NCBI GenBank assembly: GCA_977017575.1
Contig: CDRNVI010000072.1
Span: 1 to 64,000, forward strand
DNA length: 64,000 nucleotides
Direction: 5' to 3'
DNA from: Paramoeba atlantica
Taxonomy: Eukaryota > Protista > Discosea
Below, in pieces: positions 396 through 47,173 of the stretch; the first letter of the stretch is position 1; each line of letters starts with the position of its first letter. The position numbers and the translations under genes are program-made. The notes under the pieces are model-generated. The model was not told where the DNA came from. It did no database searches and saw only the letters and a list, made by a program, of their open reading frames with translations.

Positions 396-1322
396 AATTT
401 TCTTTTTTAGGCTCTTCGTTAAACGCGGTGGTTGCTTTCAACTTAGAAGTCACTCGTGCTGCGCGCTTCGCGTTGAAAACTACCGCCGCGTTTAAACGAA
501 GAGCCTAAAAAAGAAAATTTAGCCTGGAAAACGGAAAGATTGTATAGCCAAAAGTAGCCGAATTTCGGGTACAAATGGGGGTCATTTTCGCATATTTTTG
601 CTCTCAGAGCACTAAATCCGACATTTGCGCGTGGGAAATCACTCGCAGGCATGATTGAAAGCCTACCGAACGTATTGGGTAGAGAATGCGACTTCCAACC
701 ATACCATTCTTTCGACACAAAAATGCCCCTTTAGGTCCGAAAAATACTTTTTCACCTTTTTTAGTCAAAAATGGGTCATTTTGAGGGGCGCATCACGGTC
801 AGAAGAAGTGATACCTTGCGAAAACAACTGCGTAGAAAGCTAATGTAGGTCCCAAACTATCAAAATACAATAGGAGGAAACGGTTTTGGAAAAATAATTT
901 TTTTGTCAATTTTTTCGCCAAGTTGAAATTTTTTTCAAAAAAATTTTTCCGAAAAAATCCGAACTTGGCGGACCCGTCCTGCGGATACGCGGGGGGGTCA
1001 CCCCCGGGTAGGGGGGTGGAAAATGCGCGCCAAGACCCGGCTACCCTTTCTGCGGTTTTTTTTTCGAAAACTAATTTTTTCGAAAAAATTTGCTCGACCA
1101 TGCCCCCCCCCCCTGGACCCCCCCCCTGGACCCCCCCCATGGACCCCCCCCATGGACCCCCCATTTTTTTCAAAATTTTTTTTCTGTTTTGGACCACCGG
1201 AGCCCCCTTTTATATTTTTTTCTTCTATTATATTACTGTGTTCCTCTTTATATTTTCACTGTTTTTGTTCACTTTTTTTTCAATAATCGAGTGTAGAGCG
1301 GTAGTTTTACAACCACCGCAAT
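396..1322 (-). mobile_element. Family-A element, full copy (124-bp palindrome at 396-519, short hairpin+AAT at 1322)
   Basis: Palindrome arms AATTTTCTTTTTTAGGCTCTTCGTTAAACGCGG.../...CCGCGTTTAAACGAAGAGCCTAAAAAAGAAAATT; body recurs at 1385-2250 and 43706-44515. Confidence 0.85.
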
Positions 1323-1384
1323 GCATACTAAGCGGCACATTGATAATGCATACAGCACATTGATAATGCATATAGCACATTGAT
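1323..1384. repeat. ~3 x 20-bp repeat (GCACATTGATAATGCATATA) at the centre of a large inverted repeat
   Basis: Direct reading. Confidence 0.85.
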
Positions 1385-2250
1385 ATTGCGGTGGTTGTAA
1401 AACTACCGCTCTACACTCGATCATTGAAAAAAAAGGTGAACAAAAACAGTGAAAATATAAAGGGGAACACAGTAATATAATAGAAGAAAAAAATATAAAG
1501 GGGGCTCCCGGTGGTCCAAAACTGAAAAAAAAATTTGGGGGGGTCATGGTCGAGCAAATTTTTTCGAAAAAATTAGTTTTCGAAAAAAAAAACCGCAGAA
1601 AGGGTAGCCGGGGTCTTGGCGCGCATTTTCCACCCCCCTACCCGGGGGTGACCCCCCCGCGTATCCGCAGGACGGGTCCGCCAAGTTCGGATTTTTTCGG
1701 AAAAAAAAATTTGAAAAAAAATTCAACTTGGCGAAAAAAATGACAAAAAAAATATTTTTCCAAAATCGTTTCCCCCTATTGTATTTTGATAGTTTGGGAC
1801 CTACACTAGCTTTCTCCGCAGTTGTTTTCACAAGGTATCCCTTCTTCGAACCGTGGTGCGCCCCTCAAAATGACCCATTTTTTGACTAAAAAAGGTGAAA
1901 AAAGTATTTTTCGGACCTAAAGGGGCATTTTTATGTCGAAAGAATGGTATGGTTGGAGTCGCATTCTCTACCCAATACGTTCGGTAGGCTTCCATTCAGG
2001 CCTACAAGTGATTTCCCACTCGCAAATGTCGGATTTAGTGCTCTGAGAGCAAAAATATGCGAAAATGACACCATTTGTACCCCGAAATTCGGCTATTTTT
2101 GGCTATAATCTTTCCGTTTTCCAGGCCAAATTTTCTTTTTTAGGCTCTTCGTTAAACGCGGCGGTAGTTTTTCAACGCGAAGCGCGCAGCATGAGTGACT
2201 TCTAAGTTGAAAACAACCACCGCGTTTAACGAAGAGCCTAAAAAAGAATT
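1385..2250 (+). mobile_element. Family-A element, inverted relative to 396-1322
   Basis: Starts ATTGCGGTGGTTGTAAAACTACCGC, is the reverse complement of 396-1322, ends in the large palindrome. Confidence 0.85.
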
Positions 2251-2278
2251 ATCAATGTGCGAGTGGGGTGCTGTGTCA

Positions 2279-2363
2279 GCACGGTTTCGCGCGGTTTCGG
2301 TGCGGTTTCGCACGGTTTCGCCGCGGTTTCGTGCGGTTTCGCCGCGGTTTCGCGCGGTTTCGG
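2279..2363. repeat. 10-12-bp tandem repeat (GCGCGGTTTC-like)
   Basis: About 8 imperfect copies. Confidence 0.85.
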
Positions 2364-2630
2364 AGAGATCCGAACGCCTTCTGTACATAAAGGTGGGTAT
2401 CGGTGCGGCCTCAGTGCGATCTCGTTTGGTGTGGTGCGGCCTCAGTGCGGTCTCGGCCAATCTTCCTTGCGTCATATTTCAACAATTGCGTAGAAAAAAT
2501 CTGAGTTAAGATTGTATTGGATCAAAGGATAATCAAAAGCAAATATGTGTACATTTTTTATGTTCTAACCAAGATTCATACTTTTTTTTTATGAAATATC
2601 GGTAGTGCGGTAATTTAGAAAACGTGAACA

Positions 2631-3450: not shown

Positions 3451-4158
3451 AGTCAAAGTATAGGAATATTGCATAAGTATAGGAATATTGCATAAGTATA
3501 GGAATATTGCATAACTCTATTTTTGACCCCCCACCCCTTAATATGAGTTTCTTGATTTCGGTAGACAATTATAACCGTTGTATAGATCTGCGATTACACT
3601 GTCGGGAAACCACCTATTTTTTGTAATTTGAAACAAATTTTTACAAAGTCAAGGGTGGTATATTTCTCGAAAATATGCGATTTTTTTTATTTGTTACGTG
3701 CCTCATAGACTTGTAACCCCGGGAAAATGGAATACTGAACATATGGACGCTATAACGTACCCTAATCTATCACTTTGAACTACTTTTACTTCGAATGAAG
3801 ACTTCACATATAAGGGGTGACCCTTCCAAAATGCCCTAAAATGGCCACTTTTCGTGGATTTTGCTTAAAAAAGCCCACTTTCACCTGTTTTTGGCTACTT
3901 TGGCGGGGTCACCCCCTATATGCAACTTTTCCATTTTTAGAAAATGTGATGTGCGTATATACTTTGGAGTCTCATCTACAAGGAAAAGGATTTGTAAGAT
4001 CCAATACAGGTGGGATCTTGCCAGGAGAAATTTTTCAAAAGTTAAAAAAAAATTAGAGGGGCTCTGCAATATTCCTATACTTATGCAATATTCCTATACT
4101 TATGCAATATTCCTATACTTATGCAATATTCCTATACTTATGCAATATTCCTATACTT
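3451..4158. mobile_element. Non-autonomous element bounded by inverted arrays of a 19-bp repeat (Merlin-type ends)
   Basis: 3 x AGTATAGGAATATTGCATA at 3457-3512, 5 inverted copies at 4064-4158; similar arrays bound the Merlin at 26609-28210; no TSD recognised. Confidence 0.65.
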
Positions 4159-4239
4159 CGGAACAGCACATTCACATGCATAAAGTTTTAGGCACCGATT
4201 TCAACTTTTGCCAAAAGTTGGTGCGGGGTGCTATGGGAA

Positions 4240-4599
4240 CTCACCTTTGCTCCCGGTGAGGCCCCGGAGTTGCGAGAGGCCTCCATACCCCACAACTACC
4301 ACCTTCCCCCCCCTATTTAGCGGGGGTTCGCGCGAGCGACCCCTGATAAATGGGGGGAAGGTGGTAGTTGTTTTGGGGAATATGAGAGGCCGAACGCACG
4401 GAGGGGCCGGCGGGCCACTGAGTCACGTGAAAGTGTGACACCCAAAAACTAAACCTAGATCTTGTTTGCACAACAGAACCGTAAATGGCACGTAAAGATA
4501 GTTGGCCGGGGATTGTGTATTTATTTTCCTATGCATTGTCACGTTCTTTACCTTTTGGGGGCAAATTGTGAACGTCGACCAGAAAAGGGGCATTCTAAA
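4240..4599. repeat. Family-D dispersed repeat with ~90-bp internal hairpin
   Basis: Reverse-complement copy at 8331-8740 and partial copy at 26765-26945; arms CAACTACCACCTTCCCCCC/GGGGGAAGGTGGTAGTTG. Confidence 0.8.
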
Positions 4600-5594: not shown

Positions 5595-5667
5595 TGCGAA
5601 CTGTGAGGATCGAACTCACGACCTTGGGATTATGAGACCCACGCGCTGCCGACTGCGCCAAATTCGC
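5595..5667 (-). tRNA. tRNA-Met(CAT), elongator type
   Basis: Cloverleaf: acceptor GCGAATT/AGTTCGC, loop CTCATAA, T31-T39 pair, T-arm GTGAG-TTCGATC-CTCAC, downstream TTTT. Confidence 0.95.
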
Positions 5668-5742
5668 CCCTGTCGTTCGACGCACAAGCTCTAGATTCAT
5701 TCTTGTTTTCATGTCACAAGATGTGACGTCGCTGGCGGTGAT

Positions 5743-5815
5743 GCCCCAGTGGCCTAATGGTTAAGGCGTCGGATTTCTAATCCGGAGATTGCGGGTTCGA
5801 GTCCCGTCTGGGGTA
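5743..5815 (+). tRNA. tRNA-Arg(TCT)
   Basis: Acceptor GCCCCAG/CTGGGGT, loop TTTCTAA, GTTCGAGTC, downstream TTTT. Confidence 0.95.
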
Positions 5816-5828
5816 TTTTCATCGAAAA

Positions 5829-5910: not shown

Positions 5911-5967
5911 GTGCCATGCCTTCCTTTGAGACTCTGGGTAACCGAGTAGGCCAGCATTGACTAAAAA

Positions 5968-6689: not shown

Positions 6690-7203
6690 CATGGGTCATT
6701 TTGGGAGGCGTGCCACGGCTCCAAGGAGGGGTATCTTGTGAAAAGAACGTTACCTTGTGAAAAATAGCCGATTTTCGGTTAAAATTGGGGTATTTTTGCT
6801 CTCTGAGCACTAAATCCGACATTTGCGTGTGGGAAATCACTCGTAGGCTAGAATCAAATCCTACAGAACGCAATCGGCAGAGAATGCGAATCCAACCACG
6901 CCATTCTTCCGGGACAAAAAGACCCCAAACTCCTCAAAATATAGGCAAAATGATTTAAAAAAAAATGTTGCTATTTTTTTCGCCGAGTTTAAATTTTATT
7001 CAATTTTGTTCTTCTAAAAAAACGAATTCTGAAAAAAGGTAAACAAAAACAGTGAAAACGGTGTAGAAAGCTAGAATAGGTCCCAAGCTATCAAAATACA
7101 ATAGGCGAAACGATTTTGGAAAAATATTTTTTTTACAATTTTTTTCGTCAAGTTGAAATTTTTTTCAAACAAAAAATTCGAAAAAATCCGAACTTGACGG
7201 ACC
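6690..7203 (-). mobile_element. Diverged internal fragment of family A
   Basis: Shares GCACTAAATCCGACATTTGCG..GTGGGAAATCACTCG and CTATCAAAATACAATAGG blocks with 520-970. Confidence 0.7.
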
Positions 7204-8068
7204 ATATCATATTCCCATATCATTTCGCGGGTCCATAAAATCTTTAAAAACAATTGCACAGCGAGGAGAAGAAGATGTACGAGGGCGTTGCAATCCGAAT
7301 GATATGAAGCGATGCGCAACGCTTATCTGCGGTGCTGGCGTGAAACTGGATAAAAATGGAAGTCCAACGAGTCATTTCTTTCTAAAACCTTTTATCGTGT
7401 GGAAAGGAGCTGGAAAAGGATCTAGTCACGAGATATTTGATGCAAGGACGGCTCGAGCTTTTACTCCGAAAGGTGTCGTGAACAAAGATTTTTTTCTCCA
7501 AGACTTTATTCCCTTTCTCAAACGTGAACTGGATATAAACGACGCAGGCCGCACTTTAATTTATCTAGACTCCTGCCGATCTCACATAACAAGTGACGTT
7601 CTCGATGCGTTTGCCACTGTGGCTAACTGCTATTGTGTCATATTACCCCCTGCAACAACATCCTGGATCCAATGGATTGATGTATTTTATGCTTCTTCGT
7701 ACAAACGCGAGCAAGTAAACATTTGGCACAGAGAACAACATGTCCGTCGGACCGCCCGCCAAAAAAGACACTGGATGGATAATGCCGTTGCCCGAGCGCA
7801 CGGACAAGTTATAAACCTCGACAACGACTCTCTTGATGAATCAGGGACCCTTTCCTCTTCTATGAACGTTGTTCAACAATTCAAAAGCTTGGGGTATATC
7901 GACCCTTGTGATGCATCGTGGTCGCATGTGAAATGTTTAGAAGGATATGTCTTTGTTCCACCAAGCGATGACGATGAGAGAGACGAAGCTAAGAGAATCG
8001 AAGATGCCTTTAAGCGTGGGAAAAGCGTCCAGGCACGAAAATCATTCCAAGGACGGCTCGATAAATAG
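7202..8068 (+). pseudogene. 5'-truncated pogo-like (DDE_1) transposase, DD36D
   Basis: Frame open upstream of the annotated ATG to ~7202 (KTIAQRGEEDV...KRCATLIC); LIYLDSCRSH and LPPATTSWIQWIDV; no DNA-binding N-terminus. Confidence 0.8.
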
Positions 8069-8330
8069 TGTAACCCACGACGCTCCACCGAATAAAGGTA
8101 AAGAAAAGAAAGATTTATGAAGTTTATGAAGTCGGGTAAAGATTCAGATAAAAAAAATATTGTTAAAGATTGCATACATAAAAAAACAATTTATTAATTT
8201 TATTACAAACTTAATAATAACCCGCCGACAAGTTAATATTAAGTTTCAAAACGTTGACAGGTTATTATTAAGTTTGACAGGTTATTATTAAGTTGTCAAG
8301 TTATTATTAAGTTTCAACAACTTAATATTA

Positions 8331-8740
8331 TTCCGTCCCCCGGTTTACCACCTTCCCCCCTATTTAGAATGCCCCTTTTCTGGTCGACGTTCACAATTTG
8401 CCCCCAAAAAGGTAAAGAACGTGACAATGCATAGGAAAATAAATACACAATCCTGCGGCCAAACCACAATCCCCGGCCAACCATCTTTACGTACCATTTG
8501 CGGTTCTGTTGTGCAAACAAGATCTAGGTTTAGTTTTTGGGTATCACACTTTCACGTGACTCAGTGGCCCGGCCGGCCCCTCCGTGCGTTCGGCCTCTCA
8601 TTTTCCCCAAAACAACTACCACCTTCCCCTCATTTACCAGGGGTCGCTCGCGCGACCCCCGCTAAATAGGGGGGGAAGGTGGTAGTTGTGGGGTATGGAG
8701 GCCTCTCGCAACACCGGGGCCTCACCTGGAGGAAAGGTGA
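8331..8740. repeat. Family-D repeat, inverted relative to 4240-4599
   Basis: Reverse-complement alignment by eye; extra copy of the hairpin-arm motif at the far end (~8346-8367). Confidence 0.8.
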
Positions 8741-8967
8741 ATTTATCTAATTCCATTTTTTGGCAATGTTAAAAACCTAAAATTTCTAGTCAACCTCAAA
8801 TTTCGCGAACGCCAACCGAAAATGATCATATTTTTTAAGGGTTCAATTTTTTTTTAATGGGTCAAAAAAATTTTAAGGGCTCAAAAAAAATTTGAAGGCT
8901 CGATTTTTTTTCAACTTTTATGCCAGATAAAGGTGCAGAATTTTTTTCACTATTTAGCGCTTTTTTA

Positions 8968-9745
8968 TTTAGGTTCTTCGTTATACGCGGTGGTTGTTTT
9001 CAACTTAGAAGTCACTAATGCTGCGCGCTTCACGTTGAAAACTACCACCGCGTATAACGAAGAGCCTAAAAAAGAAAAATCGCCAGAAAATCATGAATAA
9101 TCTAGTTTTTCGGGTGAAAACCCTCGATTTTTCGCCAAAAATTGCGAAACCCGAAATTGGGATGTTTTTGATGCCTTACCAGTAGGGGCAGGAGGTGAAT
9201 CTGTCAAACAAAAACGTCGTAGAATGGTAGCTGGGGTCCCAAACTCCTAAAACACGTTTTAGGAGTCGATTTTGGAAAAATAATATTTTTGCTCTTTTTT
9301 GGGTCAAAAAAAGATTTTTTTTGGTCATCCCAAAAAATTTCGGAATTTTTGACCTTGTCGGACCCCTCCCGCGCGTACCAGGGGGGGTTACCCCAAGGTG
9401 GGGGGGTGGAAAGTCATCGCCGCGGCCTACTCTACCACTTCCCTGCGCTCGATTTCGAAAATCAAGATCCCCCCCTGGATCCCCCCCTGGATCCCCCCCT
9501 GGATCCCCCCCTGGATCCCCCCCTGGACCCCCCCCCATGGACCCTCCCCATGGACCCCCCCCTTGGACCCCCCCCTTGACCCCCCATTTTTTTCAATTTT
9601 TTTTTTCAATTTTGGACCACCGGGCCCCCACTTTATATTTTTTTCTTCTATTATATTACTGTGTTCCTCTTTATATTTTCACTGTTTTTGTTCACTTTTT
9701 TTTCAATAATCGAGGGTAGAGCGGTAGTTATACAACCACCGCAAT
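8968..9745 (-). mobile_element. Family-A variant (same ends, different internal segment)
   Basis: Palindrome ~8968-9080, GGATCCCCCC VNTR, terminal CAACCACCGCAAT; internal segment shared with 13450-13680 and 47380-47600. Confidence 0.8.
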
Positions 9746-9884: not shown

Positions 9885-10877
9885 ATGACCTCACGTCGGA
9901 AAAGAAGTGCTACAGAGTCTTTTGGAAACATGGAACACTTTACAAGTGTTGGCAACCGTCCTGCACCTCATTGGTTGGCAAAACAATTTGGCGTTACATA
10001 TGTATGTCGGTTACACATGTATGTCGGTAAAGCTCTGGAAAACTTATGCAAGGGTGACAAGCGCAGCGCTACGTTGATAGCTGCTGTTTCATTGGCAGGT
10101 TCCATATTAGACCCATTCATTATATGGAATGGTGTAGAAACCCATAGTGGTGCACATGTTCGTACTGCTTCTAGCTCCGTACAGTATCAAACTTCCAATC
10201 ACTACATTTCTACTGGGGCACTACTTGAGTTTATCCATTGCATTTTGCACCCCTATTACATTCAATTGCGTAATGAGAAGAAGTTTGTAATGAAGGTGCC
10301 TTTGATACTTCTCATCGACTGTTGCAGTGTTCACATTAGCTCGAGTACTAAAGAGCAGATTATTCATGAATGTCGAGAAGGTGGTGCATTTGACTGGTTA
10401 AGAATAGTGTATGTTCCTGCGAGATGCACTGGAAAATTTCAGCCTTGTGATGTTGGTGTTTATGATCGACTTAAACAAAGGTTACGTTATGAGCGCTCAA
10501 ACGTATTGCTAAAGTATTGCCGTTATTGTAAAATCAAAGGGAGAACAAATTGGGACAAAACGCTCGGGAACAAGATATCCAAGGAGCAGCTCCTTGAGTC
10601 CATCACACTCTCGTACAACCATATGAGAAGCCCTAAGCAATGTGCCGCTACTCCAAGCGCCTGGGAAAAGTGTGGAATAACTGTGGAGACATTAGAAGGC
10701 AGATCGAATTCCACGGAAGCTTGGACACGTCGCCGTGAATTGTTTCCTCATCTTTATGAGCAAGATATTGCAGCTACACAGGATGAAACAGATATCTCGG
10801 ACGAAGACTGGGAGGCCGAGGTGCCCAATGACCTTGATACACAATCACACTTGGGGTTTCCGGCAGTTAAAAATTAA
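9885..10877 (+). pseudogene. pogo-like (DDE_1) transposase remnant, DD43D
   Basis: DKRSATLIAAVSLAG...PFIIW, LLIDCCSVH, YVPARCTGKFQPCDVGV; no HTH or first Asp recognisable. Confidence 0.75.
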
Positions 10878-11462: not shown

Positions 11463-12634
11463 TTAAAAACTAATTATAAATATAAATAAAAATTCAAAAA
11501 GTTTATAATTTATATTATAATTAGTTATTAGAGGGGGGTAATCTAATTCACTTGTAGCGATGTGTTGCGCGAGTTCAACGGTGCTAAGACCCAACACTTG
11601 GGTAGAGATGTTCAATTGTTCCGTACAATCCTCAGACTCTGAGGAGCTGTCCACCAAAAGGAGTGGACGAAGACCGGAAGGATACTCTTTCAAGATCATC
11701 TTCTCTAAATCAAGGGGGGAGTCATTTACCAGCACTTCCATGGGTCGCTTGTTAATCTCCTTGGCAACTTGACGAACTTCGTCTTGTGTCAATCCAGTGA
11801 AGAGAAATTTTTTGTGGAAAAACACACGCACACGACCATTAAAGTTTTCGACCCCCCCTTTCCCCAACTGGCATACGGCTTGCAGAAGAATGACTCGCAG
11901 CCATAAGTCCCATTCACCACTTCGTGCTTGGCAAACTCCGTACCATTATCGTATGTAATGGTCAGTACCTGATAACCCTGCAGAGCTTCCACTATTGATT
12001 GCGCAACGTGGTCTGACTTTTTGGAAGATATGCCGAATTTGAACAATGTGCCGAATCTGCTTTTCCGCTCAACAAGACTTAGCATATACTGGCTCTGCTT
12101 GGTACCTTCAATGAGGTCTGCCTCCCAGTCCCCGTAACGCTGACGATCATTCACAACCTGAGGTCGTTCACTAATATGCACCCTATTAGGAATTTTAAGA
12201 CGATTGACCCCACGGCGACGTTTATATCCACGCCTACCCCCACGGCGTAAAAGTTTCGACAAGTGACCTCCAGCTGCTTCATCTCGCTCTAAGAAGTTAT
12301 ATATTGCTTTGCGGGATACCTTGATTTTGTGCTCCTTCCACATAGTTACGCTGATCTGTTGTGGGCTGTAACGGCGCGTCAGAAGATCCGTCACAATTCC
12401 AATTACTTCGTTTTCAATTTTACGGGGTCGTACCATTCTTTGTTTCATTTTGTTCTGGGCAGTGCGCTCCGCCAAACGAGCATCGTACACTCCCTTTTTG
12501 CAACCACGTTTTGTCTCGCGACTTATACACGATTGATGGACATTCAAACGCTCCGCAATCTCTGCTTTAGACAACTCTTCGTTGTTATAAAGCAATTCGA
12601 TTTGCGCTCGGTCAGTTGAGTCAAGTCTCTTCAT
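11463..12634 (-). mobile_element. IS30-family transposase gene (~390 aa) split by one -1 frameshift at ~11858
   Basis: HTH (KAEIAERLNVHQSCISRETKRG), YSPQQIS, ISERP..R...GDWEADL, LVERKSRF, TITYDNGTEF, PYASW.KG.VEN.NG, INKRP; D-33-E spacing once frames are joined. Confidence 0.9.
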
Positions 12635-12682
12635 GCGAACGGTGAATAAAAAGGAAAACTGGTGTATACAATATCTAATTCT

Positions 12683-12920
12683 GCAATATGCAATATAATG
12701 GTGCATTATGCAATATAAACGTGATTATGCAATATAATGGTGCATTATGCAATATAAAGGTGATTATGCAATATAAAGGTGATTATGCAATATAAAGGTG
12801 CACTATGCAATACAAAGGTGATTATGCAATATAAAGGTGCATTATGCCAGATCAAGGTGTATTATGCCAGATAAAGGTGAATTCATGCCAGATAAATGTG
12901 AATTCATGCAATATAAAGAG
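12683..12920. repeat. ~12 x 19-20-bp repeat (GGTG(C)ATTATGCAATATAAA)
   Basis: Direct reading; starts ~50 bp upstream of the IS30 ATG. Confidence 0.9.
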
Positions 12921-12924: not shown

Positions 12925-13680
12925 TTTTTATGCAAGATAGTGGTGCGGGTGCCAACACGTTCGGTAGACTTGAATTCATGCGCACGAGTGATTTCCCACA
13001 TGCAAGTGTGGGGTTCGGTGCTCTCGGAGCAAAAATAAGCAAAAATACCCGAAAATAGGCTTTATAACTCCAATTTTTGACTCAAATCCTTCCGGTTTCT
13101 TCGGCTTTCCTGGCCAAATTTTTCTTTTTTAGGCTCTTCGTTAAACGCGGCGGTAGTTTTCAACGCGAAGCGCGCAGCAGGAGTGACTTCTAAGTTAAAA
13201 CCAACCACCGCGTTTAACGAAAAGTCTTTATGAGATATGCAAGTAGCGTCCGCCAGGTTCGGATTTTTTCGGAAAAAAAAATTTGAAAAAAAATTCAACA
13301 TGGCGAAGAAAATGGCAAAAGAAAAATTGTTTCGAAATCCTTTGTCCTATTATATTTTGATAGTTTGGGTCCTATACTAGCTTTCCACGCCGTTATTTTC
13401 GCAAGATATCCCTTCTTCGAGCCGTGGTAGGCCTCCTAAAATAATTTTCCACCCCACCTGGGGGTGACCCCCCCTGGTACGCGCAGGAGGAGTCCGACAA
13501 GGTCAAAGTTTTTGGGATGACCAAAAAAAAAACATTTGACCAAAAAAAGTAAAAATATATTTTGTCCAAAATTCACTCCTAAAACGTATTTTGAGAGTTT
13601 GTGACCTCAGCTACCATTCTGCGACGTTTTTTTCGACAGATTCGCCTCCTGCCCCTACTGGTAAGGCATCAAAAACGGAA
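12925..13680 (+). mobile_element. Rearranged family-A fragments, palindrome at ~13120-13220
   Basis: Blocks match 1660-2250 and the reverse complement of 9170-9400. Confidence 0.7.
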
Positions 13681-16800: not shown

Positions 16801-17730
16801 ATACGAATATGTCTATGTCCTTTGCGTCCGCCTCGGTAAGGTGCAGGTAAGACGCATTTAGGGAGCATTGCGAGCAACGTCCATGCCTCCACCGTATTTT
16901 CTTGAACAGCAGAAGTAAAGACTTGTGTCAAAATGCTCGCCCACAGGAATGTGGGACGTCTTTACATGTACTTATGGGCAGTGCCCACACAGAGCTTAGC
17001 GTTGGTAGCAGGTTTTCCGGAGGAACATCCGCTGCGTTTCTAGGACATGTCGTTGGCCTAGGCGGGGTTGGAGATCTGACATGGTGGTTGCGGCCTTTGC
17101 AGTGCTTGGGGTGAGACTTTTCCTTGTTTTTGTCGTAGTGCCTGCCGCAATCCTTGCAGAGAAATCTTCCATCTCTCTCCCACCCGTCTGTGGGTCCGCT
17201 TTCGCCGTGTCGGTGGGCCACATGGTTGTAACACGCTTGCCATTGTCCACCATGTGGAGGCGTCTTCCAAGAGCATCCTTCCGCTGGACATACTCGTTGC
17301 GTGCTGTGTTGTAGAGACGGTAACGGTTTGCGTTCTTGCGCTTGTTTGGAGAAGAAATTTTCGCGCCAGAGACCTCCGGCGGGTTTCCTGCGCTCGCATC
17401 CATAACGCGAGAGTGATTGGTCTCTTCATCATCCGTCACTCTGCCCGTGTCCGGTGTGGGATTCTCTCCAGCGAACTTGGCGGCTCTTTCTGCCCAGTGT
17501 TACGGTATGTTCTTGGGAATAGGTGTCGTGTATAAAAGTTCATTGTAGGAGCTCTGTCCAGAGATTAAGTGTGCGTTACCTGCAAATTGGTCCCAATCAC
17601 CCGTGTTGTGAGAAATCTCTTCCTGGCGGAAAGAGTCGTCGTCCATGGGCAATGCATTCGCGCCGAAAAGATCGTCTTGTGGCATGATTATACCCTCTTG
17701 GGGAAAAAAGTGGGATAATTAAAATGTTGT
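13820..17730 (-). mobile_element. CRE/SLACS-like non-LTR retrotransposon, degenerate (N-terminal Zn finger, RT, CCHC + RLE endonuclease)
   Basis: CKDCGRHY..SHPKHC; DVRPIEAGETLRRLVSK; QYGV...GAERVIH; KVDLRNAFN; YMDD; HALLC..HN, RPADV, LDFAVT, VESFGSW. Stops, frameshifts and RT deletion; 3' boundary approximate. Confidence 0.85.
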
Positions 17731-20504: not shown

Positions 20505-20779
20505 GGCAAGCGAATAGTAATCTATGTCTGAAAATGGGAAAGTGGAAGTGTTGGAGTCTTACCCAATACTTAATGGTGTTGTGGACACTCTCAGCACCAT
20601 TAGTATGGTATCCCTTCTCGTTCACAAACTCCTTAAATCAACTGTACGGATATTATTCGCATTTTTTTATTATTCGCAATACACTTATTATTCGCAAATA
20701 CACTTATTATTCGCATTTTCTATTATTCGCATTTTTTTGGTTTTGGGATTTTTTGTCCTTTTTATATCTGAATGAAGTG

Positions 20780-20985
20780 TTACAAGCTCACAATATTCGT
20801 CGGCTTAATGCAGGAGGAACCGTCAATTATATGCAAAAAGATGAGACTTGTACGAGTACGGTGAAGAGAGGGATGAAATTCCTCACGGAGTGTGTGAACG
20901 GAAAGTTGAAAGTAAACGGTGGGTCTAGATTTTGACGTATTTTGGCAGACATCCAACTCTTTTGTGAATCTGTGGAGATGCAATA
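20780..20985 (+). pseudogene. Internally deleted Merlin fragment (QKDETC subfamily)
   Basis: GTVNYMQKDETC and KVNGGSRF*RILADIQLFC match GTVVFMQKDETC and TVNGISRIRRIFQDIRMFC of the 27-kb Merlin. Confidence 0.7.
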
Positions 20986-21416
20986 AGCAAGGGTGATGCA
21001 ATAAGCAAAGATGGAGGAAGTGATTGGCAAAGGTGAGAGGAATAAGCAAAGGTGGAGGAAGATAGATGTAGTCATGTAACGAGAAGCACGATGCATTCGA
21101 GAATGATTTTAGGAAAAACCTTTTTTTGCGCAATTTAGGTACTAATTGTCCCATTCTTTTGACTGGAAGTGTGTGACCAAGCGCCGTAGAGGAGGTAGGA
21201 GGCGCAAGGACAGAAGCAGAAGGCGGAGAGTTCTGACTTTTTGCCGCGGCGACGACGACTTACTCGCGTGGGAATCTGTAAGCATACCTAGGGAACGTGT
21301 TTTCATGGCTCTGGAGCCCCTGCAACTTGGCGTCTTTTTTGGGTCCACTCGGGGTCACGGTGGGTCACTAGGGGCCATGGTGGGCCACTGCTACTGGTCC
21401 TTGTTGATCATTTTGT

Positions 21417-21719
21417 ATGTATGTAATTATTGTGATGGGAAAAATGTATTGTCCTCGCTGCAAGGTGGACCGCCACGTGTCTTTGGGGGAACCTATAAGG
21501 TGTGTAATGTGTGCATGCACCATTGAAAGTGATGCAAAAGATCCTTGCCTCCAATGTCAAAGGGTCTCTGTAATCATAGGTACGAACTACTGTCCTCTAT
21601 GTAATGCTCCACAGGACTCTGAACGACTTCTGCCCAGTGCCATCGACCATTTACACGCTCGTGAGCTTCAAGGGAAGCACAATTTTCGCGCTATATCTTG
21701 CGGATGGAGGGTTTTATGA
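21417..21719 (+). CDS. Cys-rich Zn-ribbon-like ORF, probably cargo or relic
   Basis: Four CxxC pairs (CPRC, CVMC, CLQC, CPLC) in 100 aa. Confidence 0.3.
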   Translation: MYVIIVMGKMYCPRCKVDRHVSLGEPIRCVMCACTIESDAKDPCLQCQRVSVIIGTNYCPLCNAPQDSERLLPSAIDHLHARELQGKHNFRAISCGWRVL

Positions 21720-22013
21720 AAGTCGCACCAATAGGCTGATACTGCCTCATTCAAAGACAATTCCCCTATCAGTTGTCCAAGCAAAAACAGGATCACAAGT
21801 GCGAACAATCTCTTTTACACTTTCATAGCTTTTTAGGTCATGTTTTCATAAAATCCTTCATTAATTCCTTAGTGGGGTATTATCAATGCCTAGCATCTGT
21901 CCCTCGCCGGAGGTATTTCTCGCCGGTTTTTGGGTCCACTCGGGGCCACTTGGGGCCACCAAGGCCCACTAGGGGCCACACTGGGCCACTCGGGCCCTGC
22001 ATTGGGTCCTCTG

Positions 22014-22203
22014 TAATCAAGGCTAAAGTGGGCGAGGGAGATACCGATAACACAGATGCGGCGGCTTCCTACAGAAAAAATGGCATTCCCCTTTTGATAT
22101 GAAAGCACTCGGGTACATACAAAGTAAGAGATACCATCTTTCCTGTGCGAAGCCGCCGCATCTGTGTTATCGGTATCTCCCTCGTCCACTTTAGCCTGGA
22201 TTA
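22014..22203 (+). repeat. Family-P 190-bp palindrome (body remnant at 21140-21300)
   Basis: ~75-bp arms with GAGGGAGATAC core; 21140-21300 is the reverse complement of 35030-35195. Confidence 0.8.
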
Positions 22204-22827
22204 TGTCGTTCTTCTGCGTTTTATGAACGCTTTTCCTTACATTTCTTTCGCATGAATGCACCGAATGCGAATAATAAGTGTAAAACACACTTATTATTCG
22301 CATTCGGTGCAAAATACATTTATTATTCGCATTTTTTTCTTATTCGCACGCGAATAATATCCGTACAGTCGGTTTACTATGATTTACGGAGTAGTGACGT
22401 CAAACTTGGTTCAAACCATTGTAAACCCTCCAACAATCGCTCACTACCACGGATGGCGCACTGGCAAGATGGGGAATGATGAAGCCATGGAGGGTAGGCG
22501 TATCACGACGCTTCACCAATTTCCAATGGGTCCGCCCCGTTTTACCAGTGCCTCGAGACTCCGTGACAGTTGCGAACCACCATCCTCTTTTCCGCTGTCT
22601 ACGGCCCCGATTATACTTCCGTTTGCCGACGAAAGTCTCATCGACCTGCACTCGACTGAATTCATAATTGGACATGGTTTCCTTACGGAGTGGAACGTGG
22701 GTGCAGGTGGACTGCACATCAAACACCCACATGAGAGACCGTGCGCCACCAGTGGCTGCACTGGTGTTCCATTTATAGAGTGTTGTTACAGATCGCCATG
22801 TTGTGGAAGGGTGGCCAGCTGGGAGAT

Positions 22828-23033
22828 AACCCAGATTGAAAGGGGCGAGGGAGATACGAAGCAACAGGCCTGGAAGATTCCCACTGAAAAGAAATGGTAT
22901 CTTCCCGCACGAGAAAAGCCTTTGCGCTTGCTAGCTCGGAGACGAACTTCGTGCGAGGAGATACCATTTCTTTTCAGTGGGAATCTTCCAGGCCTGTTGC
23001 TTCGTATCTCCCTCGCCCCTTTCAATCTGGGTT
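22828..23033 (+). repeat. Family-P 206-bp palindrome truncating the Merlin 5' end
   Basis: Near-identical to 44555-44760 including ~35 bp of adjacent body. Confidence 0.85.
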
Positions 23034-23072
23034 TATTATATTTACTTAACATACCTATACCTTGATAACATA

Positions 23073-24919: not shown

Positions 24920-25290
24920 ATAATTTAGTCGCTTCGTTAAACGCGGTGGTTGTTTTCAACATAGCAGTCACTCATGCTGCGAGCTTCGCGTTAAAAACTA
25001 CCTCCGGGTTCAAAACAAGCGACTAAAAAAGAAAAATTGAATAGGAAACCTAAAGATATCGGAAGGATTCGAGCCAAACATAGCAGATTTGGGGTAAAAA
25101 TGGGGGCATTTTCGCATTTTTTGGTTCTTAGAGCACTAAGTCCGACATTCGCGTGTGGGCAATCGCTCGTAGACATGAATTAAAACCTGCAGAACGTAAT
25201 GGGTAAAGAATGCGACTCCAACCACACCATTATTCCGACAGAAAAGTACCCCTTTGGAACCACGGCTCCAGGGAGCGGTATCTTAAAAAA
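24920..25290 (-). mobile_element. Diverged family-A palindrome plus partial body
   Basis: Similarity to 400-760. Confidence 0.7.
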
Positions 25291-26608: not shown

Positions 26609-28210
26609 GGCCAAAGTAAAGGAATATTGCATAAGTCAAGGAATATTGCATAAGTCAAGGAATATTGCATAAGTCAAGGAATATTGCATAAGTCAAGGAA
26701 TATTGCATAAGTCAAGGAACATTGCGTAAGTCAGGGAATATTGCATAAATCAAGAAGCACTTCTGTCCTCCCGGTGAGGCCCCGGAGTTGCGAGAGGCCT
26801 CCATACCCCACAACTACCACCTTCCCCCCATATTTAGCGGGGGTCGCTCGAGCGACCCCTGATAAATGGGGGGAAAGTGGTAGTTGTTTCGAGGAATATG
26901 AAAGGCCGAACGCACGGAGGTGACGGCCGGGTCACTGAGGTAAGACAGTCCTAGGACCTCCTACGTTACTTCTAGCATGTCAACACGTACAACCGTTATA
27001 TGATAAATACTGTTACAAGATAGGGGAATGTAATATCTTTCAAATACGAGCGTAGAAGAATATGAGTGTTGCTAACGTGGACAATTCTGGAAGAAACAAT
27101 TCTGGAAGGAGTAGCATCTTGTTCCTGTTGTTTCCTCTTCGTCGTCCCGGAAAAAACACACCTGGGCGCAAAACATGCGGATGTCTTGAAAGATGCGACG
27201 AATACGGGAGATGCCATTGACCGTTAGAGAATCATTATCAAGTTCAGCAAAGAGCTTCATGCGGTTGGTACGGACGTCCTCTGCATTGCCAGGGCGACCG
27301 CCCCGACTTTTTAGCTCCTTTTTGAGACTTGAATTAGCTGCCTCCACGGTGTTCGTGTGAACACCAGTTGCAGCCACCTACTCCTTCTTGTGGTTTACTA
27401 CATCGCTGCGCCACTCTCTACTTAGGCACTTGCTTGCTGCGGCACCGTCCGTATATACGTATTTGGGTACGATAATTTTTAGCGGCATGTCGGACATGTG
27501 CTGTCATGGTGGCTGCGTCCGTCCTTTCCAGATACCGAACAAAGATTTCCTTCATGGGATAATGCACCTCTCCGGTGGTATCAAGCACTTGATCACAATT
27601 CACAAGTGTATGGTACCAGGAAGATCCATCACGATGTGCTCTTTTCCCTTTCCCACATCCCATGAGTTTACTCTTGGAAACACAAGTCTCGTCTTTTTGC
27701 ATAAAGACTACCGTTCCTTCCACCGCATCAAAGCGCATGTCGTGCGCCATGGCAATTATGAACTCAAGCATTTGCGTGACAGCCATAACAGTCACTCTAC
27801 TCAGCGTACTTTCGCGCAAAATATGCTTGACTGCTATTCTTTGAGCCAAACTATATAGGATCTGCAAAGTGTCTTTGATGCCCCGTTTGCTCTCCTGACT
27901 AAAAAGGGGTTCCATGATGCTGTACCGAGCTCGGCAACCGTTGGTCTCCAGGTCAGGGCAATACCAAAACTCTCCGTCGCAGACGCAGGATAACTCCTTA
28001 TTTCCATGGTACTTTTTTTGTTACACCGGACCTGTTGTTTCTCCACTCGTGTCCCCAAAATTGGTGAAAGACAGATGCTCAAAGCAAATAAAGTCGTCGC
28101 AAGCCTCACAAAACCAGTTCACACTACGCAGGCATGAAAAAAAAAGAAATAACACAATTTACGGCTTATGCAATATTCCTTTACTTATGCAATATTCTTT
28201 GACTTTCCCC
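26609..28210 (-). mobile_element. Merlin transposon (degenerate transposase, 8-bp TSD)
   Basis: Ends GG..AAAGT followed by 19-bp AAGGAATATTGCATAAGTC arrays; flanks GAACTTTC (26601-08)/GAATTTTC (28211-18); QKDETC, YTDG, VNHKKE, GVHTNTVE. Confidence 0.88.
26765..26945. repeat. Family-D partial copy inside the Merlin
   Basis: Matches 4250-4420. Confidence 0.8.
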
Positions 28211-28255
28211 GAATTTTCAATACATATTCTAAAGTGTTATGAAACAATGCATGTA

Positions 28256-29007
28256 AACCCTGTTCCGGGTTAATGTGTCTAGATCTACTTATTGTTCAGG
28301 GGGGGCACAATAAGTGGAAATGACCGCTATTATTGTGCCCCCCCTCCAAAATATTGGGGATCCCATATTTTGGAGGGGGGGTTTATTCCCATTGTCTCAA
28401 AATTAACTTTGTTCAACACCGCATTCCTTAAATATACTCCCCCTGTCATTAATAATGATAATCTTAAAAACATTGTCATTCTACGTGGTGAAGACTCTTA
28501 AAAGATTATCAACTTTATTTCATGCACGCAGGATTTTCTTACAAAAAATTTTGTGTCTTAAAAAAACAGTATTTTGAACTAAACAACTACTGGTAAGGTT
28601 TCAAAAACGGCCCAAATTTGGGCTAAAATTTCGCAATTTTTGCCGAAAAATCGCGCTTTTTCACCCAAAAAAGGAGATTGTTCACAATGTTTTGGCAATT
28701 TTTCTTTTTTAGGCTCTTCGTTAAACGCGGAGGTAGTTTTCAACGCGAAGCGCACAGCGTGAGTGACTTCTAAGTTGAAAACAACCGCCGCGTTTAACGA
28801 AGAGCCTAAAATTAATGACAGGGGGAGTAACTAATTCTGCACATAAAGAGGTTTGTCCATAAAAAAAAGCGCCGCGAATTGTTTTAATCTTTTTTTGGTT
28901 TTTCCAGTATTTAGTTATTGTTCCTAGAGCCACGTATTGTGCCTAGAGCCAGTTATTGTGCAGGGGGTGGGGGGGGGGGGGGGGGCACAATAACCCGGAA
29001 CACGGTT
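28256..29007. mobile_element. TA-flanked MITE (TIR AACCSTGTTCCGGGTTA)
   Basis: 17-bp TIR, TA at both sides, palindromic target CATG-TA-CATG. Confidence 0.75.
28437..28827. mobile_element. Nested TA-flanked MITE (TIR CTCCCCCTGTCATTAAT) containing a family-A palindrome
   Basis: Perfect 17-bp TIR with TA; palindrome at ~28700-28810. Confidence 0.8.
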
Positions 29008-34849: not shown

Positions 34850-35373
34850 CAGGGTAAAGTGGACGATGGAGATACCAGTAGTGTAGGTGCGGCTGTTTCG
34901 CACAGGATAAACGGCATCTCCACCTTTTTAGGTGCCTGTCTTCATGCTATAAGGGAGATTTTTTCTGTGGGAAACTTCCGCACCTACACTATTGGTATCT
35001 CCCTCGTCCACTTTACCCTGGGTTACAAAGTAAAAACACATTCCCTAGGACTCCTTACATCTTCCCACGCGAGGAAGTCGTCGTCGCACGGCGAAAAGAC
35101 AGAGGGCTCCGCTTTCTTCTTTTTGCCTTGCGCCTCCTCCTTCCTCCAAGGTCTTGCGTACCACAAACTTCCAGTTGAAAAAAGCAATTGGGGTTTTCAA
35201 ATCACTTCCGAAGAAGGTAGTCTCAAGCCGTCCAAAAGGTACGTTTATCTTTCTTAAAACTATCAGTTTATGGTGTTGTCCTTGATTCTTTGCGAAAAAA
35301 CTATTTCCGGAAACTTTTTCGTCGGGTCAAACTTATTAATATACGATAGCGAGGGAGTAGTATCTCCCTCAAT
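34850..35373 (-). mobile_element. Family-P element, apparently complete
   Basis: 170-bp palindrome 34850-35020; other end GAGGGAG-TAGTAT-CTCCCTC-AAT. Confidence 0.75.
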
Positions 35374-39588: not shown

Positions 39589-39619
39589 ATTTCACAGATA
39601 AACTGTTTATCTAATCCAG

Positions 39620-43705: not shown

Positions 43706-44515
43706 ATTGCGGTGGTTGTAAAACTACCGCTCTACCCTCGATTATTGAAAAAAAGGTGAACAAAAACAGTGAAAATAAAAAAGTAAATATAAAGAGTAAC
43801 ACAGTAATAAAGTAATAATAGAAGAAAAATTTATAAAAGGGGGCCCCGGTGGTCCAAAATTGAAAACACTGGGGGGTCTAGGGGTAGCCGGGGTCTTGGC
43901 GCGTATTTTCCACCCCCCTACCCGGGGGTGACCCCCCCCGCGTATCCGCAGGACGGGCCCGCCAAGTGCGGATTTTCTCAGAAAAAACATTTTGAAAAAA
44001 AAGTCAACTTGGCGAAAAAGATAGCAAAAAAAATATTTTTCCAAAATCGTTTCCCCTATTGTATTTTTATAGTTTGGGACTTATACTAGCTTTCTGCGCA
44101 GTTGTTTTCGCAGGCTATCTCTTCTTCGAGCCGTGGTATGCCCGCGAAAATGGCCCATTTTTGATTAAAAAAGGTGAAAAGGTATTTTTCGGACCCCAAG
44201 GGGCCTTTTTGTGTTGAAAGAATGGTGTGGTTGGAGTCGCATTCTCTACCCATTACGTTTGGTGGGCTTTCATTCATACCTGCAAGTGATTTCCCATACG
44301 CAAATGTCGGATTTAGTGCTCTGAGAGCAAAACTAGCTAAAATTGGCCCCATTTTTATCCGACAATCGGCTATTTTTGGCTATAATGTTTCCGTTTTCTT
44401 GAGCTTTCCAGGCCAAATTTTCTTTTTTAGGCTCTTCGTTAAACGCGGTGATAGTTTTCAACGCGAAGAGCGCAGCACGAGTGACTTCTAAGTTGAAAAC
44501 AACCACCGCGTTTAA
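43706..44515 (+). mobile_element. Family-A element, near-full copy
   Basis: Starts ATTGCGGTGGTTGTAAAACTACCGC, ends in palindrome truncated at CAACCACCGCGTTTAA. Confidence 0.85.
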
Positions 44516-44814
44516 TTAATTTTTATAAATGGGTCATTTAGGGGCATTTATAAAAACCCAGATTGAAGGAGGCGAGGGAGATACGAAGCAACAGGCGTGG
44601 CAGATTCCCACTGAAAAGAAATGGTATATCCCTGCACGAAGTTTGCCTCCGAGCTAGCAAGCGCAAAGGCTTTTCTCGTGCGGGGAGATACCATTTCTTT
44701 TCAGTGGGAATCTGCCACGCCTGTTGCTTCGTATCTCCCTCGCCCCTTTCAATCTGGGTTATCTACAAGCTGGTCGCCCTTCCACAACATGGCCAGCTGG
44801 CTTGTGTGCAGATG

Positions 44815-45590
44815 GCCACTGCAGCTACATTGCATTACTGCAGTCACTTCCTCACGTGGCAGTGCACTTACTCTCGCACGTGCCACTGCAGCTACACTAC
44901 AGTCACTGACTCTCTCGCGCGCCACTGCATCTACACTGTGTTCACTGTCTCACGTGGAAGTAGGCTTACTCGCGCACGTGCCACTGCATCTACACTGCGT
45001 TCACTGCCTCACGTGGCAGTACTCTGTCACTTACCACTGTACTTACAGTGGTAGTGCACGTACTCTTGCACGTGCCACTGCAGCTGCAATGCATCACTGC
45101 AGTCACTTCACGCGGCAGTGCAGCTGCATTGCATCAATACAGTCACTGCCTCACGTCGCAGTACACTTACTCTCTCACGTGCCACTGAAGCTACACTGCA
45201 GTCACCGACTCTCGCACGTGCCACTGCATCTACACTGCGTTCGCTTCCTCACGTGGCAGTAGACGTACTCGCGCACGTGCCACTGCAGCTACACTGCGTT
45301 CTCTGCCTCACGTGGCAGTACACTTACTCTCTCACGCGCCACTGCAGATCCACTGCATCAATACAGTCACTGCCTCACGTGGCAGTACACTTACTCTCTC
45401 AAGTGCCACTGCAGCTACACTGCATTACTGCAGGCACTTCCTCACGTGGCAGTGCACTTACTCTCGCACGTGCCACTGCAGCTACACTGCAGTCACTGCC
45501 TCTCTCACGCGCCACTGCGTCTACACTGTGTTCACTGCCTCACGTGGCAGTACACTTACTCTCTCAAGGGCACTGTATCTGCACACTACC
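44815..45590. repeat. Modular minisatellite (GCCACTGCAGCTACACTGC / CTCACGTGGCAGTACACTTACTCTCGCACGT blocks)
   Basis: Shuffled ~25-60-bp modules. Confidence 0.9.
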
Positions 45591-45762
45591 ACTCGGACCT
45601 GCTCATTATTTTTCTCTCTATATATATACAAAATGCAAACCGTGTTTTTGGTGGCCAGCTGGCCACTTTTTCGAGAAAAAAAATTCTGAAAAAAAAAATT
45701 GTTCTGAATATGTTTTTTGCGATCTTGAGCAAATAATTTTTCTTGCGATTTTTTTAGTAAAA

Positions 45763-45838
45763 TGTCGATGTCGGGAATCGAACCGCGGACGTCCAGCGTC
45801 AAAATGGAACCCCTTTACCAACTGGACTACTCAAAGGA
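45763..45838 (-). other. tRNA-like relic (A-box/B-box-like, no acceptor stem)
   Basis: TAGTCCAGTTGGTAAAG and GGTTCGATTCC, followed by TTTT; ends do not pair. Confidence 0.4.
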
Positions 45839-47173
45839 CGCTCCTTAGTCAACCAGTTTGTCGTATCGCAGGCCTTTGCACACGCACCTTTTTTTGCCAA
45901 AGGTGTTCTAAAATTTGGGAAATAAGGTTGTTTTAGATGATTTTTAGAGTATTGAAGAGTTCATCTAATGACCTACTGCTCTGTTTCGGAATTTTGAAAA
46001 AACTCGATCTTATGCTTCTTTGATGATCTTTTTCAATTTTTGGAATTAACCTTAGTAAGCGAGTTAGATACTCCATATCTCCCTCAATATATTATTTATA
46101 CTGTGCCCCCCCCACTTATAGTGCCGCGGTTTTCGACCAAACGGCACTATAAGTGGGGGGGCTAGTATGTTTCAGGTCGAGGGTGAAAATTTTCCTCCCC
46201 CCAAAAAAAAGCGCAGCGCTTCGCGGCGCAATTCTTTCTATCATGTGGTTTTGAGTGCCTAAGCGCTGTAAATGTTTGTGAAATATTAATTCGTGAACAA
46301 ATTTCGAAATGGCGAGCTGTATTCCGCATGTTTCCATAACGAAAAAGATGTTTTCACCTTTTTTGCATTAACACGACTTTTGTTGACACAACTTTTGTTG
46401 CCTCGACTTTTGTTGCGAAAACTTTTTTCCCCCCAGTAGGGGAGAAGAAAGATCAACGCACTCATGAGCCAAAAAAGGTCTTTGCCCACCAAAAAAGCGT
46501 ACCCCAGTAACAAGGATTCTAGTAGTCCATCCTAGTAGTCCAACAAGGATTCTAGAGTCCAAAATGAGGGAGTTGCTATGCTCTGTCCATGGTATCATGT
46601 TCAGGGGAACAGCAACTCCCCATTATCCCGGCGTAGTAAACACGCCTTGGCTTGCCTGGCACTACGATTGCCGAAAAAAAAAATCGGTTCATTTCGCAGC
46701 CCAGTCGCTTCCCACTTAAGGGGCCCGTTCCCACAACCGAGTGATCTCCCCGGCAGCACGGTTTTACCCATGCGTTGAGAAGGCTGGGGTGTGAGACCAG
46801 GGTGCATTAGTAGAAAATTTTCGGAGGAAGAAATACGAAGGAGATTTTACTGTATAAGGGAGTTTGAGTGCAATAGGAAAAAAAGGGGGTTGGCTTAAAT
46901 GTTTTGGTACCGACTCATACCAATTACTCTAAATTCGTTCATGATAAGATTTAAACCAGGTGACGGTTAAGTGTTTATTAGGAACCATAAGTCTGGACAT
47001 TTGGAACAGGGCCCGCGGTCGGAGTTTGGCTACTCCCCATTCCTGCTCAAGGGGTAGGAACAGGTTTCCTCGACAACACGTCGCCGTCCGGAGTCTTTCC
47101 GTCTGGAGACGCGTTGTTAAGTCCAAACCTTGTTGACGCAACCAGTGTGTATAAAACTGTTCTGTATATTATG

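Follow-up and report, generated by a model that had tools for sequence, protein, structure and literature searches.

The 64,000-nt stretch of Paramoeba atlantica DNA analysed here (contig CDRNVI010000072.1, positions 1-64,000 of the forward strand; hereafter the window) has a G+C content of 37-55% and a eukaryotic character. It contains long intron-free genes (a 788-aa PIP5K gene and an array of leucine-rich repeat, or LRR, genes), a tRNA cluster and many transposon remains. A Pfam scan of 49 window frames returned PIP5K, LRR and LYR, as well as the transposon-derived frames, i.e. a reverse transcriptase, two pogo-like DDE_1 frames, an IS30-like frame and an IS1595/Merlin-like fragment. The same window holds copies of three unrelated, non-coding repeat families, designated here A, P1 and P2, which have one end design: ATT, a hairpin with its foot at the next G, a variable body with a variable number tandem repeat (VNTR), and a long palindrome that represents the 3' terminus. 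The three families are probably non-autonomous rolling-circle transposons of the Helitron2/Helentron (HLE2) type, their right end being an unusual fold-back.

The copies identified in the window are given below. They include every one that had been located by an earlier reading of the same sequence (the original prediction), which listed five A copies and two P copies, each with additional fragments.

1-395, minus strand: family A copy A1, with its 3' part cut by the window edge; 5' ATT at 393-395; directly follows A2 head-to-tail
396-1322, minus strand: family A copy A2, full length; terminal palindrome 396-519, 5' ATT and hairpin 1301-1322
1323-1384, no strand: spacer of 62 bp, built of 20-bp units with ...GCATT^ATCAATGTGC; bounded on one side by the 5' end of A2 and on the other by that of A3, which face each other
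1385-2250, plus strand: family A copy A3, full length (subfamily a); ATT 1385-1387, 5' hairpin 1388-1409, terminal palindrome 2129-2250; poly-G/C region in the body near 1530-1550
6691-7203, minus strand: internal body fragments of A, neither end present
8961-9745, minus strand: family A, subfamily b; 5' 220 bp and palindrome as in A2/A3 (92-93% identity), body different, with a 12-bp C-rich VNTR at 9469-9585
12952-13679, plus strand: rearranged A pieces, including a 3' palindrome at ~13105-13225
21162-21303: P1 body piece inside a terminal inverted repeat (TIR) element at 20644-22370, as is the palindrome on the next line
22015-22202, plus strand: solo P1-like terminal palindrome, ending ...CCTGGATT
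22789-23034, plus strand: P2, 5'-truncated, last 250 bp only; ends ...CTGGGTTT, as the full copy does
24921-25257, minus strand: A, 5'-truncated, last 335 bp with palindrome
28587-28810, plus strand: A subfamily b, 5'-truncated, last 224 bp
34850-35373, minus strand: family P1, 524 bp; ATT 35371-35373, 5' hairpin 35351-35370, terminal palindrome 34850-35020
43706-44517, plus strand: family A, subfamily c; right arm of the palindrome ~20 nt short, ATT end kept
44554-46088, minus strand: family P2, 1535 bp; ATT 46086-46088, weak 5' hairpin 46061-46085, terminal palindrome 44554-44762; 67/98-bp VNTR at 44844-45563
47165-47605, minus strand: A subfamily b, 5'-truncated, last 420 bp with palindrome

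Further loci of the same genome were read from ENA assembly ERZ24900291, in which the window DNA recurs. Twelve look-ups yielded 11 distinct loci (given L numbers below), three of which represent the window's own contig. The census of 5' ends covers the window and nine further loci, 201 kb in total, and only ~0.2 Mb of the genome was read overall.

The original prediction had described a short motif that is folded as a hairpin at the 5' end and reused in the arms of the palindrome, a description that agrees with both motif counts and folding. With up to three mismatches allowed, ATTGCGGTGGTTGT was matched 19 times in the window, compared with 6.55 expected matches, a count that none of 100 shuffles reached; its five exact matches correspond to the five A 5' ends of the window, while the looser ones represent motif copies inside palindromes. 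Similarly, ATTGAGGGAGATAC was matched 12 times, compared with 4.61 expected. Folding as single-stranded DNA placed the foot of the hairpin at base 4 in A, P1 and P2, the first paired base being the G after ATT. The 5' hairpins of A (-8.0 kcal/mol, z -4.3) and P1 (-6.6 kcal/mol, z -3.7) exceeded that of P2, which is weak (-3.2 kcal/mol, z -1.6). The A hairpin is composed of GCGGTGGTTGT, a loop and ACTACCGC; its stem carries a mismatch, and a census of perfect-stem hairpins is thus uninformative. In one A copy (L010 6953-6974), the second hairpin arm reads ACCACC in place of ACTACC, resulting in a perfect 5' stem.

At the 3' end, the A palindrome was shown to form a near-perfect hairpin of 122 nt (-45.6 kcal/mol, z -9.7), and the P2 palindrome one of 206 nt (-106.3 kcal/mol, z -22). 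The A palindrome represents the reverse complement of the 5' hairpin opened at its loop, with GCGGCGGTAGT in the proximal arm and ACAACCACCGC in the distal arm, and reaches outward by ~29 more paired bases to the terminus. The P1 and P2 palindromes are built likewise, with GAGGGAGATAC and GTATCTCCCTC. The distal arm holds the 5' motif in inverted form, and both ends therefore show the same stem when single-stranded. In A, this inverted copy is 28-29 nt away from the terminus; the distance is shorter in P2 (19-20 nt) and in P1-type copies (15-19 nt). The 15-29-nt tail beyond this 3' repeat has no hairpin of its own and pairs with bases lying upstream of the proximal arm, which places the 3' repeat inside a palindrome of 120-230 nt.

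A third palindrome type (family C) was observed at 4292-4371, 8610-8690 and 26800-26890, and in L006 at 7456-7532, with arms that hold GGTGGTAGTTGT and ACAACTACCACC, similar to the A motif. It comes after the A 3' end at 8961 and, in L006, after a 265-bp A 5' module and a 20-bp VNTR. This palindrome is not terminal, since homology continues for 65-230 bp past it. Small palindromes capped by G-runs or C-runs are also present beside elements (46104-46165, 28300-28345 and 28350-28390); the first of these gave sub-threshold microRNA-family matches on both strands (31 bits vs a cut-off of 80), which were taken as a palindrome artefact.

Families were compared by BLAST at an E value of 0.01. The claim of two families without mutual similarity was upheld between A and P, which have only A/T-rich low-complexity runs in common, but P itself was found to split into P1 and P2, between which no match was obtained. 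By this comparison, 'family P' is two unrelated bodies that have only a 13-base end motif in common, both starting with ATTGAGGGAGATA and both carrying CGAGGGAGATAC in two palindrome arms. Family A units measure 812-950 bp in the ATT-to-palindrome orientation, and subfamilies a (1385-2250), b (8961-9745) and c (43706-44517) have the first 150-220 bp and the last 120 bp in common at 92-97% identity. Subfamilies a and b are alike only in the first 220 bp and the palindrome, their bodies being swapped and their ends conserved. All A and P copies seen are non-coding, and the predicted variable body with a VNTR was located at four sites inside element bodies (171-234, 1098-1162, 9469-9585 and 44844-45563).

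Read in element sense, positions 45757-45830 (minus strand) of P2 resemble, by eye, the 3' half of a tRNA (TTCGATTCC). Derivation of P2 from a tRNA as a short interspersed element was considered and dropped, as 45757-45830 yielded no ARAGORN call and no Rfam match at an E value of 1.

To assess abundance, sequencing depth was summed over Logan contigs of four runs from three samples, a measure that is not itself a copy number. Summed depth over family A was ~150-fold to well over 1000-fold that of unique flanks, with peaks at the 5' end and the palindrome, and that over P2 was 10- to 30-fold. Judged by contig depth, the copy number of family A is about hundreds or more. In the Logan runs, 25, 15 and 4 contigs with mutually unlike AT-rich flanks start matching exactly at 43706, a 5' boundary that is common to many genomic copies. 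ENA contigs break within or beside these repeats.

The 5' junction was shown to be nearly constant. ATT precedes 18 of 19 A-type and all five P-type 5' hairpins, the exception being one GTT. Independent 5' ends number 23, with ATT in 22 of them, as two pairs among the 24 are copies of one inverted duplication in L009. The 5'-ATTG that had been described as invariant is therefore present in all independent ends except one, but its ATT already exists at the target. This is evident at four insertion sites for which an uninterrupted paralogue is available, all of which have ATT at the junction. In the first, a P1-like 5' end lies within A, and ...CTTCTATT followed by GAGGG at the filled site corresponds to ...CTTCTATTATATT in five intact A copies. 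In the second, an A 5' end lies within a P1-like element, with ...GGTTAATT followed by GTGG at the filled site and ...GGTTAATTCGCC in an intact copy at a distance of 2 kb. In the third, an A 3' end adjoins a TTATTATTAAG repeat, and GGTTATT then ATTAAG at the intact site (8270-8300) corresponds to GAAAATT then ATTAAG at the filled one. For an A copy in an LRR-gene paralogue (L006), the 3' flank begins directly after the GACATT of the paralogue, and the 5' flank ends in ACC ATTG, compared with ACC ACTG in the paralogue. From these four comparisons it follows that X-ATT-Y becomes X-ATT-G...ATT-Y. The junction letters fit a cut at AT^T, whereby the element would begin with T, insert between T and T and duplicate nothing; the 5' repeat would then lie 1 nt from the end, or 3 nt if ATT is counted as part of the element.

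Among 10 complete copies, none is flanked by direct repeats exceeding 3 bp. The predicted lack of a target-site duplication (TSD) holds to this extent, although full A copies are each bracketed by ATT...ATT. The alignment of flanks that had been proposed as a check yielded ATT in four uninterrupted paralogues, no TSD beyond ATT, and asymmetric inverted repeats. The ATT brackets around A copies could alternatively represent the 3-bp TSD of cut-and-paste miniature inverted-repeat transposable elements mobilised by a DDE transposon of the window, candidates for which are the pogo-like DDE_1 frames at 9885-10877 and 51522-52730, the IS30-like frame at 11789-12706 and the IS1595-type (Merlin-like) fragment at 22400-22654, which adjoins a P2 fragment. 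Such elements are expected to carry TIRs at their very ends, flanked by a TSD of fixed length, a pattern not seen here: without ATT, the termini are not inverted repeats (GCGGTGG... vs ...AAAAAAGAAA) and their outermost bases are not complementary, while the inverted repeat is asymmetric and lies 15-29 nt inside the 3' end. ATT is furthermore absent from the 3' flank in three of five P copies, and the exact head-to-tail units and very high abundance (by contig depth) with swapped bodies also argue against a DDE parent, which we regard as highly improbable.

Some A insertions have flanks that are inverted copies of each other. Positions 28437-28455 and 28811-28829 are 19-bp inverted copies (TACTCCCCCTGTCATTAAT and its complement) that bracket 28456-28810. 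Similarly, 1375-1384 and 2251-2260 represent 10-bp inverted copies (GCACATTGAT and ATCAATGTGC), which could be explained by an inversion between the facing copies A2 and A3. A flank homologous to the 1323-1384 spacer also precedes another A copy in L003.

The 3' junction was found to be more variable. Among 22 tabulated A 3' ends (a twenty-third is present in L012), 13 are full or within 2-3 bases of ...CCTAAAAAAGAAAATT and nine are shortened by 7-24 nt. The terminal ATT is kept in 16 of the 22, and much of the raggedness is therefore a change of length inside the A-rich tail. P2 has a precise 3' end in all three copies (...CTGGGTTT, followed by TTAT, ATTA and GAAA), and two P1-type copies end ...CCTGGATT; these P2 and P1 ends are TTT and CTG rather than ATT. 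Taken together with the P flanks that lack ATT, this indicates that the constant feature of the 3' junction is TT, not ATT. The palindrome end, which had been described as ragged, is consequently so in nine of 22 A ends, but near full length in the other 13 and precise in P2.

These 3' ends also bear on the possibility that a tyrosine recombinase mobilises the elements (in a Crypton-like manner, or as non-autonomous partners of a DIRS/VIPER-like element), with the ATT of a circle junction recombining with a target ATT. ATT-element-ATT at a target ATT is what a 3-bp crossover would produce, and unit-length dimers do exist. However, a tyrosine recombinase predicts precise ends, which is at odds with the nine shortened A 3' ends, with the common 3'-only fragments and with the TTT and CTG ends of P2 and P1. 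It also leaves unexplained why strand-specific hairpins have their foot at the junction and why the inverted repeats are asymmetric, and we consider this mode of movement very unlikely. A DIRS-like splint was looked for as well and dropped, as no internal stretch is complementary to the 3'-5' junction.

Copies were observed to abut head-to-tail or to face each other, in accordance with the original prediction. The A1/A2 junction at 395/396 reads ...GAAAATT|ATTGCGG, i.e. ATT ATT, which is compatible with a second insertion event, into the AT^T three bases further downstream, because 3' flanks often start with TATT. L011 contains an exact unit-length head-to-tail junction with a single ATT (2349-2352; ...GAAAATT then GCGG), and the 5' ends of A2 and A3 face each other. 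Arrays in L009 have junctions without a 5' hairpin, lost through ATT microhomology. Fragments that retain only the 3' end are frequent (22789-23034, 24921-25257, 28587-28810 and 47165-47605).

Positions 8700-9050 of L009 form a perfect inverted duplication, in which each arm runs from A (base 95 outward) through the initial 37 nt of a P1-like element into the initial 100-155 nt of A; its sequence reads as two nested insertions followed by a fold-back rearrangement. In L003 (11150-11116) and L009 (10763-10799), just 33-37 unrelated bases separate a 3' end from the following 5' end, both belonging to one family, which suggests insertion near resident copies.

The proposed search for long copies encoding RepHel, HUH or TnpB proteins did not reveal any in the 201 kb, in protein searches or in two metagenome scans, the latter performed with both 25-nt 5' ends (0 matches). 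The window likewise lacks RepHel, Y1 and Fanzor genes among its 49 frames by Pfam scan, as had been predicted. A protein search with the frame across the P2 palindrome gave one match, which leads to a longer P2-like 3' end in L004, cut off by the contig end and devoid of a coding frame. No match was obtained in a protein search with the P2 5' module, and a 47-aa frame from the P2 5' end, looked up as an exact sequence, was recovered from the window's own contig alone. At eight loci reached via family-A frames, the only neighbours identified were reverse transcriptase, rve and DDE_3.

The end hairpins could also be attributed to a non-Helitron HUH transposase that acts by an IS200/IS605-like 'peel and paste' route, reading both hairpins and inserting 3' of ATT. 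In the bacterial elements IS608 and ISDra2, hairpins at both ends are recognised as single strands, the cleavage sequence lies beside the hairpins, and integration takes place 3' of a short constant sequence without duplicating it. The present elements similarly have hairpins with one common stem at both ends, insertion always directly after ATT, an element 3' end that is also (A/T)TT, no TSD longer than 3 bp and no RepHel in ~200 kb. To our knowledge, there is no established eukaryotic Y1 transposon. IS200/IS605 elements differ in their bacterial Y1 enzymes and in having short hairpins without a long terminal palindrome; neither a Y1 transposase nor a TnpB/Fanzor-like frame was detected among the window frames or in the fetched loci. 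The end geometry is, moreover, close to the Helitron2 numbers (PMC3627910), and we consider an IS200/IS605-like enzyme unlikely.

Helitron2 elements were described as having a hairpin-forming repeat at 0-2 nt from the 5' terminus and a second repeat, followed by a hairpin, that lies 20-30 nt inside the 3' terminus, as well as a 5' T, insertion after T runs and an excess of 3'-end fragments, e.g. in Chlamydomonas (PMC3627910). In A, P1 and P2, the 5' repeat pairs into a hairpin (24 5' ends) and lies 1 nt from the end if the cut is at AT^T, and the subterminal 3' repeat lies at 15-29 nt, compared with ~20-30 nt. T/T insertion with a 5' T and no TSD was also found, though a 3-bp ATT duplication gives the same letters. 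The likeness to non-autonomous Helitron2 elements of Chlamydomonas (Helitron-1N1_CRe and CRe-1/2/3; Bao and Jurka 2013, PMC3627910) thus includes the terminal 5' repeat hairpin, the subterminal 3' repeat, the 5' T, insertion after a T run without TSD, and 3'-only copies in excess. In HINE and DINE-1 elements, the subterminal repeats are palindromic, insertion is at TT, terminal Ts vary and the central part holds repeats (PMC4067079), and HLE2 elements are characterised by T-T insertion and TIRs of 11-18 nt (PMC11417382; Paramecium preprint). The present families resemble HINE and DINE-1 (Thomas et al. 2014, PMC4067079; oyster tandem-repeat carriers, PMC7492417) in palindromic subterminal repeats, central micro-/minisatellites, TT insertion, non-coding bodies, very high copy number and arrays; central tandem repeats in abundant, non-coding units were found here as well. 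The Helitron2/HINE-like architecture that had been proposed was thus recovered in its 5' hairpin, subterminal 3' repeat, T^T site, satellites, head-to-tail units and excess of 3' fragments.

The right end differs from all of these, consistent with the claim that the terminal palindromes are unusually long. Published Helitron2 elements carry a short hairpin downstream of the 3' repeat (PMC3627910), whereas here a near-perfect palindrome of 120-230 nt, 10-20 times longer than that small 3' hairpin, encloses the repeat and ends at the terminus. In HINE, 3' palindromes measure 5-10 bp and lie 8-35 bp from the end, with subterminal inverted repeats 38-60 bp from the 3' end (PMC4067079). The target is (A/G)T^T here, with A in 22 of 23 independent ends, and, unlike in Helentrons, whose transposase bears an apurinic/apyrimidinic endonuclease domain, no endonuclease-bearing copy was seen in the window or the fetched loci.

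Several observations weigh against assignment to the Helitron2 kind. The short 3' hairpin downstream of the 3' repeat, a published feature, is absent in A, P1 and P2. No RepHel, PIF1-helicase or HUH domain was detected in the 49 window frames (Pfam) or in the called genes of the 11 distinct loci. The change from X-ATT-Y to X-ATT-G...ATT-Y would equally fit a 3-bp ATT duplication or a 3-bp crossover. True empty alleles were not found, as no contig joint skips A or P at 43706-46088 in the four runs from three samples. Finally, the A copy in the LRR-gene paralogue (L006 15146-16039 vs 17111-17323) lacks 93 bp of target, which the paralogue has between ACT(G) and ATT; this loss may represent a two-site integration with deletion or an unrelated indel.

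We infer the enzyme, the single-strand intermediate, the direction of movement and the rolling-circle mechanism of such a Helitron2-type system from the observed anatomy, target, dimers and abundance. Each unit would begin at T^T, within a sequence that reads (A/G)TTG in every case, and its 5' inverted repeat (GCGGTGGTTGT in A and GAGGGAGATAC in P) would form a hairpin. A RepHel-type HUH enzyme supplied in trans would nick after TT beside this hairpin, unwind 5' to 3' and stop where the 3' palindrome has TT at its foot, after which the strand would be joined into an AT^T target. Head-to-tail dimers may result from failed termination or from re-insertion beside a resident copy, and shortened 3' ends from imprecise termination or slippage in the A-rich tail. 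The two inverted-repeat motifs would imply two related but distinct transposase specificities with one nick preference.

Alternatively, the elements could belong to a eukaryotic single-strand (HUH) lineage other than conventional Helitrons, or to a deep HLE2 branch in Euglenozoa-like protists, with a functional long terminal fold-back and an (A)TT word common to families with unrelated hairpins. The fold-back might then serve, for example, in self-priming second-strand synthesis or as a terminator; we give this possibility little credence. Reports from Euglenozoa are sparse: DNA transposons were not found in 57 curated trypanosomatid genomes, where Helitron calls were judged false, Merlin in Bodo saltans and Perkinsela represents the first DNA transposons reported in kinetoplastids (PMC12278014), and Helitron-like proteins are merely mentioned for Diplonema (PMC10161547).

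If the assignment to Helitron2-like elements is true, a very abundant system of this kind in this protist would widen the known host range. A, P1 and P2 may be viewed as three natural 'swap' experiments, in which one architecture is combined with different recognition hairpins, and their comparison could distinguish the parts of Helitron2 ends that are recognised by structure from those recognised by sequence. The 3' repeat within a long fold-back would represent a variant of the published idea that repeat pairing fixes the end point of replication. In practical terms, these repeats break assemblies, and Helitron finders that expect TIRs of 11-18 nt and a small 3' hairpin may miss them or misplace their bounds.

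Other repeats and transposon remains were observed in the window. The element at 20644-22370, which encloses the P1-like pieces at 21162-21303 and 22015-22202, has inverted CTGTACGGATATTATTCGC ends and several subterminal TTATTATTCGCA repeats. The frame at 22400-22654 (minus strand) is of the ISXO2/IS1595 DDE type (Merlin-like; E 8e-6, just under the Pfam cut-off) and directly adjoins the truncated P2 copy. Tandem arrays of a 19-bp unit (AAGTMAAGGAATATTGCAT) occur in inverted pairs, 3456-3514 with 4065-4158 (0.55 kb enclosed) and 26614-26754 with 28165-28213 (1.4 kb enclosed), and look like transposon ends made of subterminal repeats. At the end of the window, a 6.3-kb satellite of an 18-bp unit (54060-60413) abuts a 1.48-kb tandem unit with tRNA-Ser(TGA) at 60420-64000.

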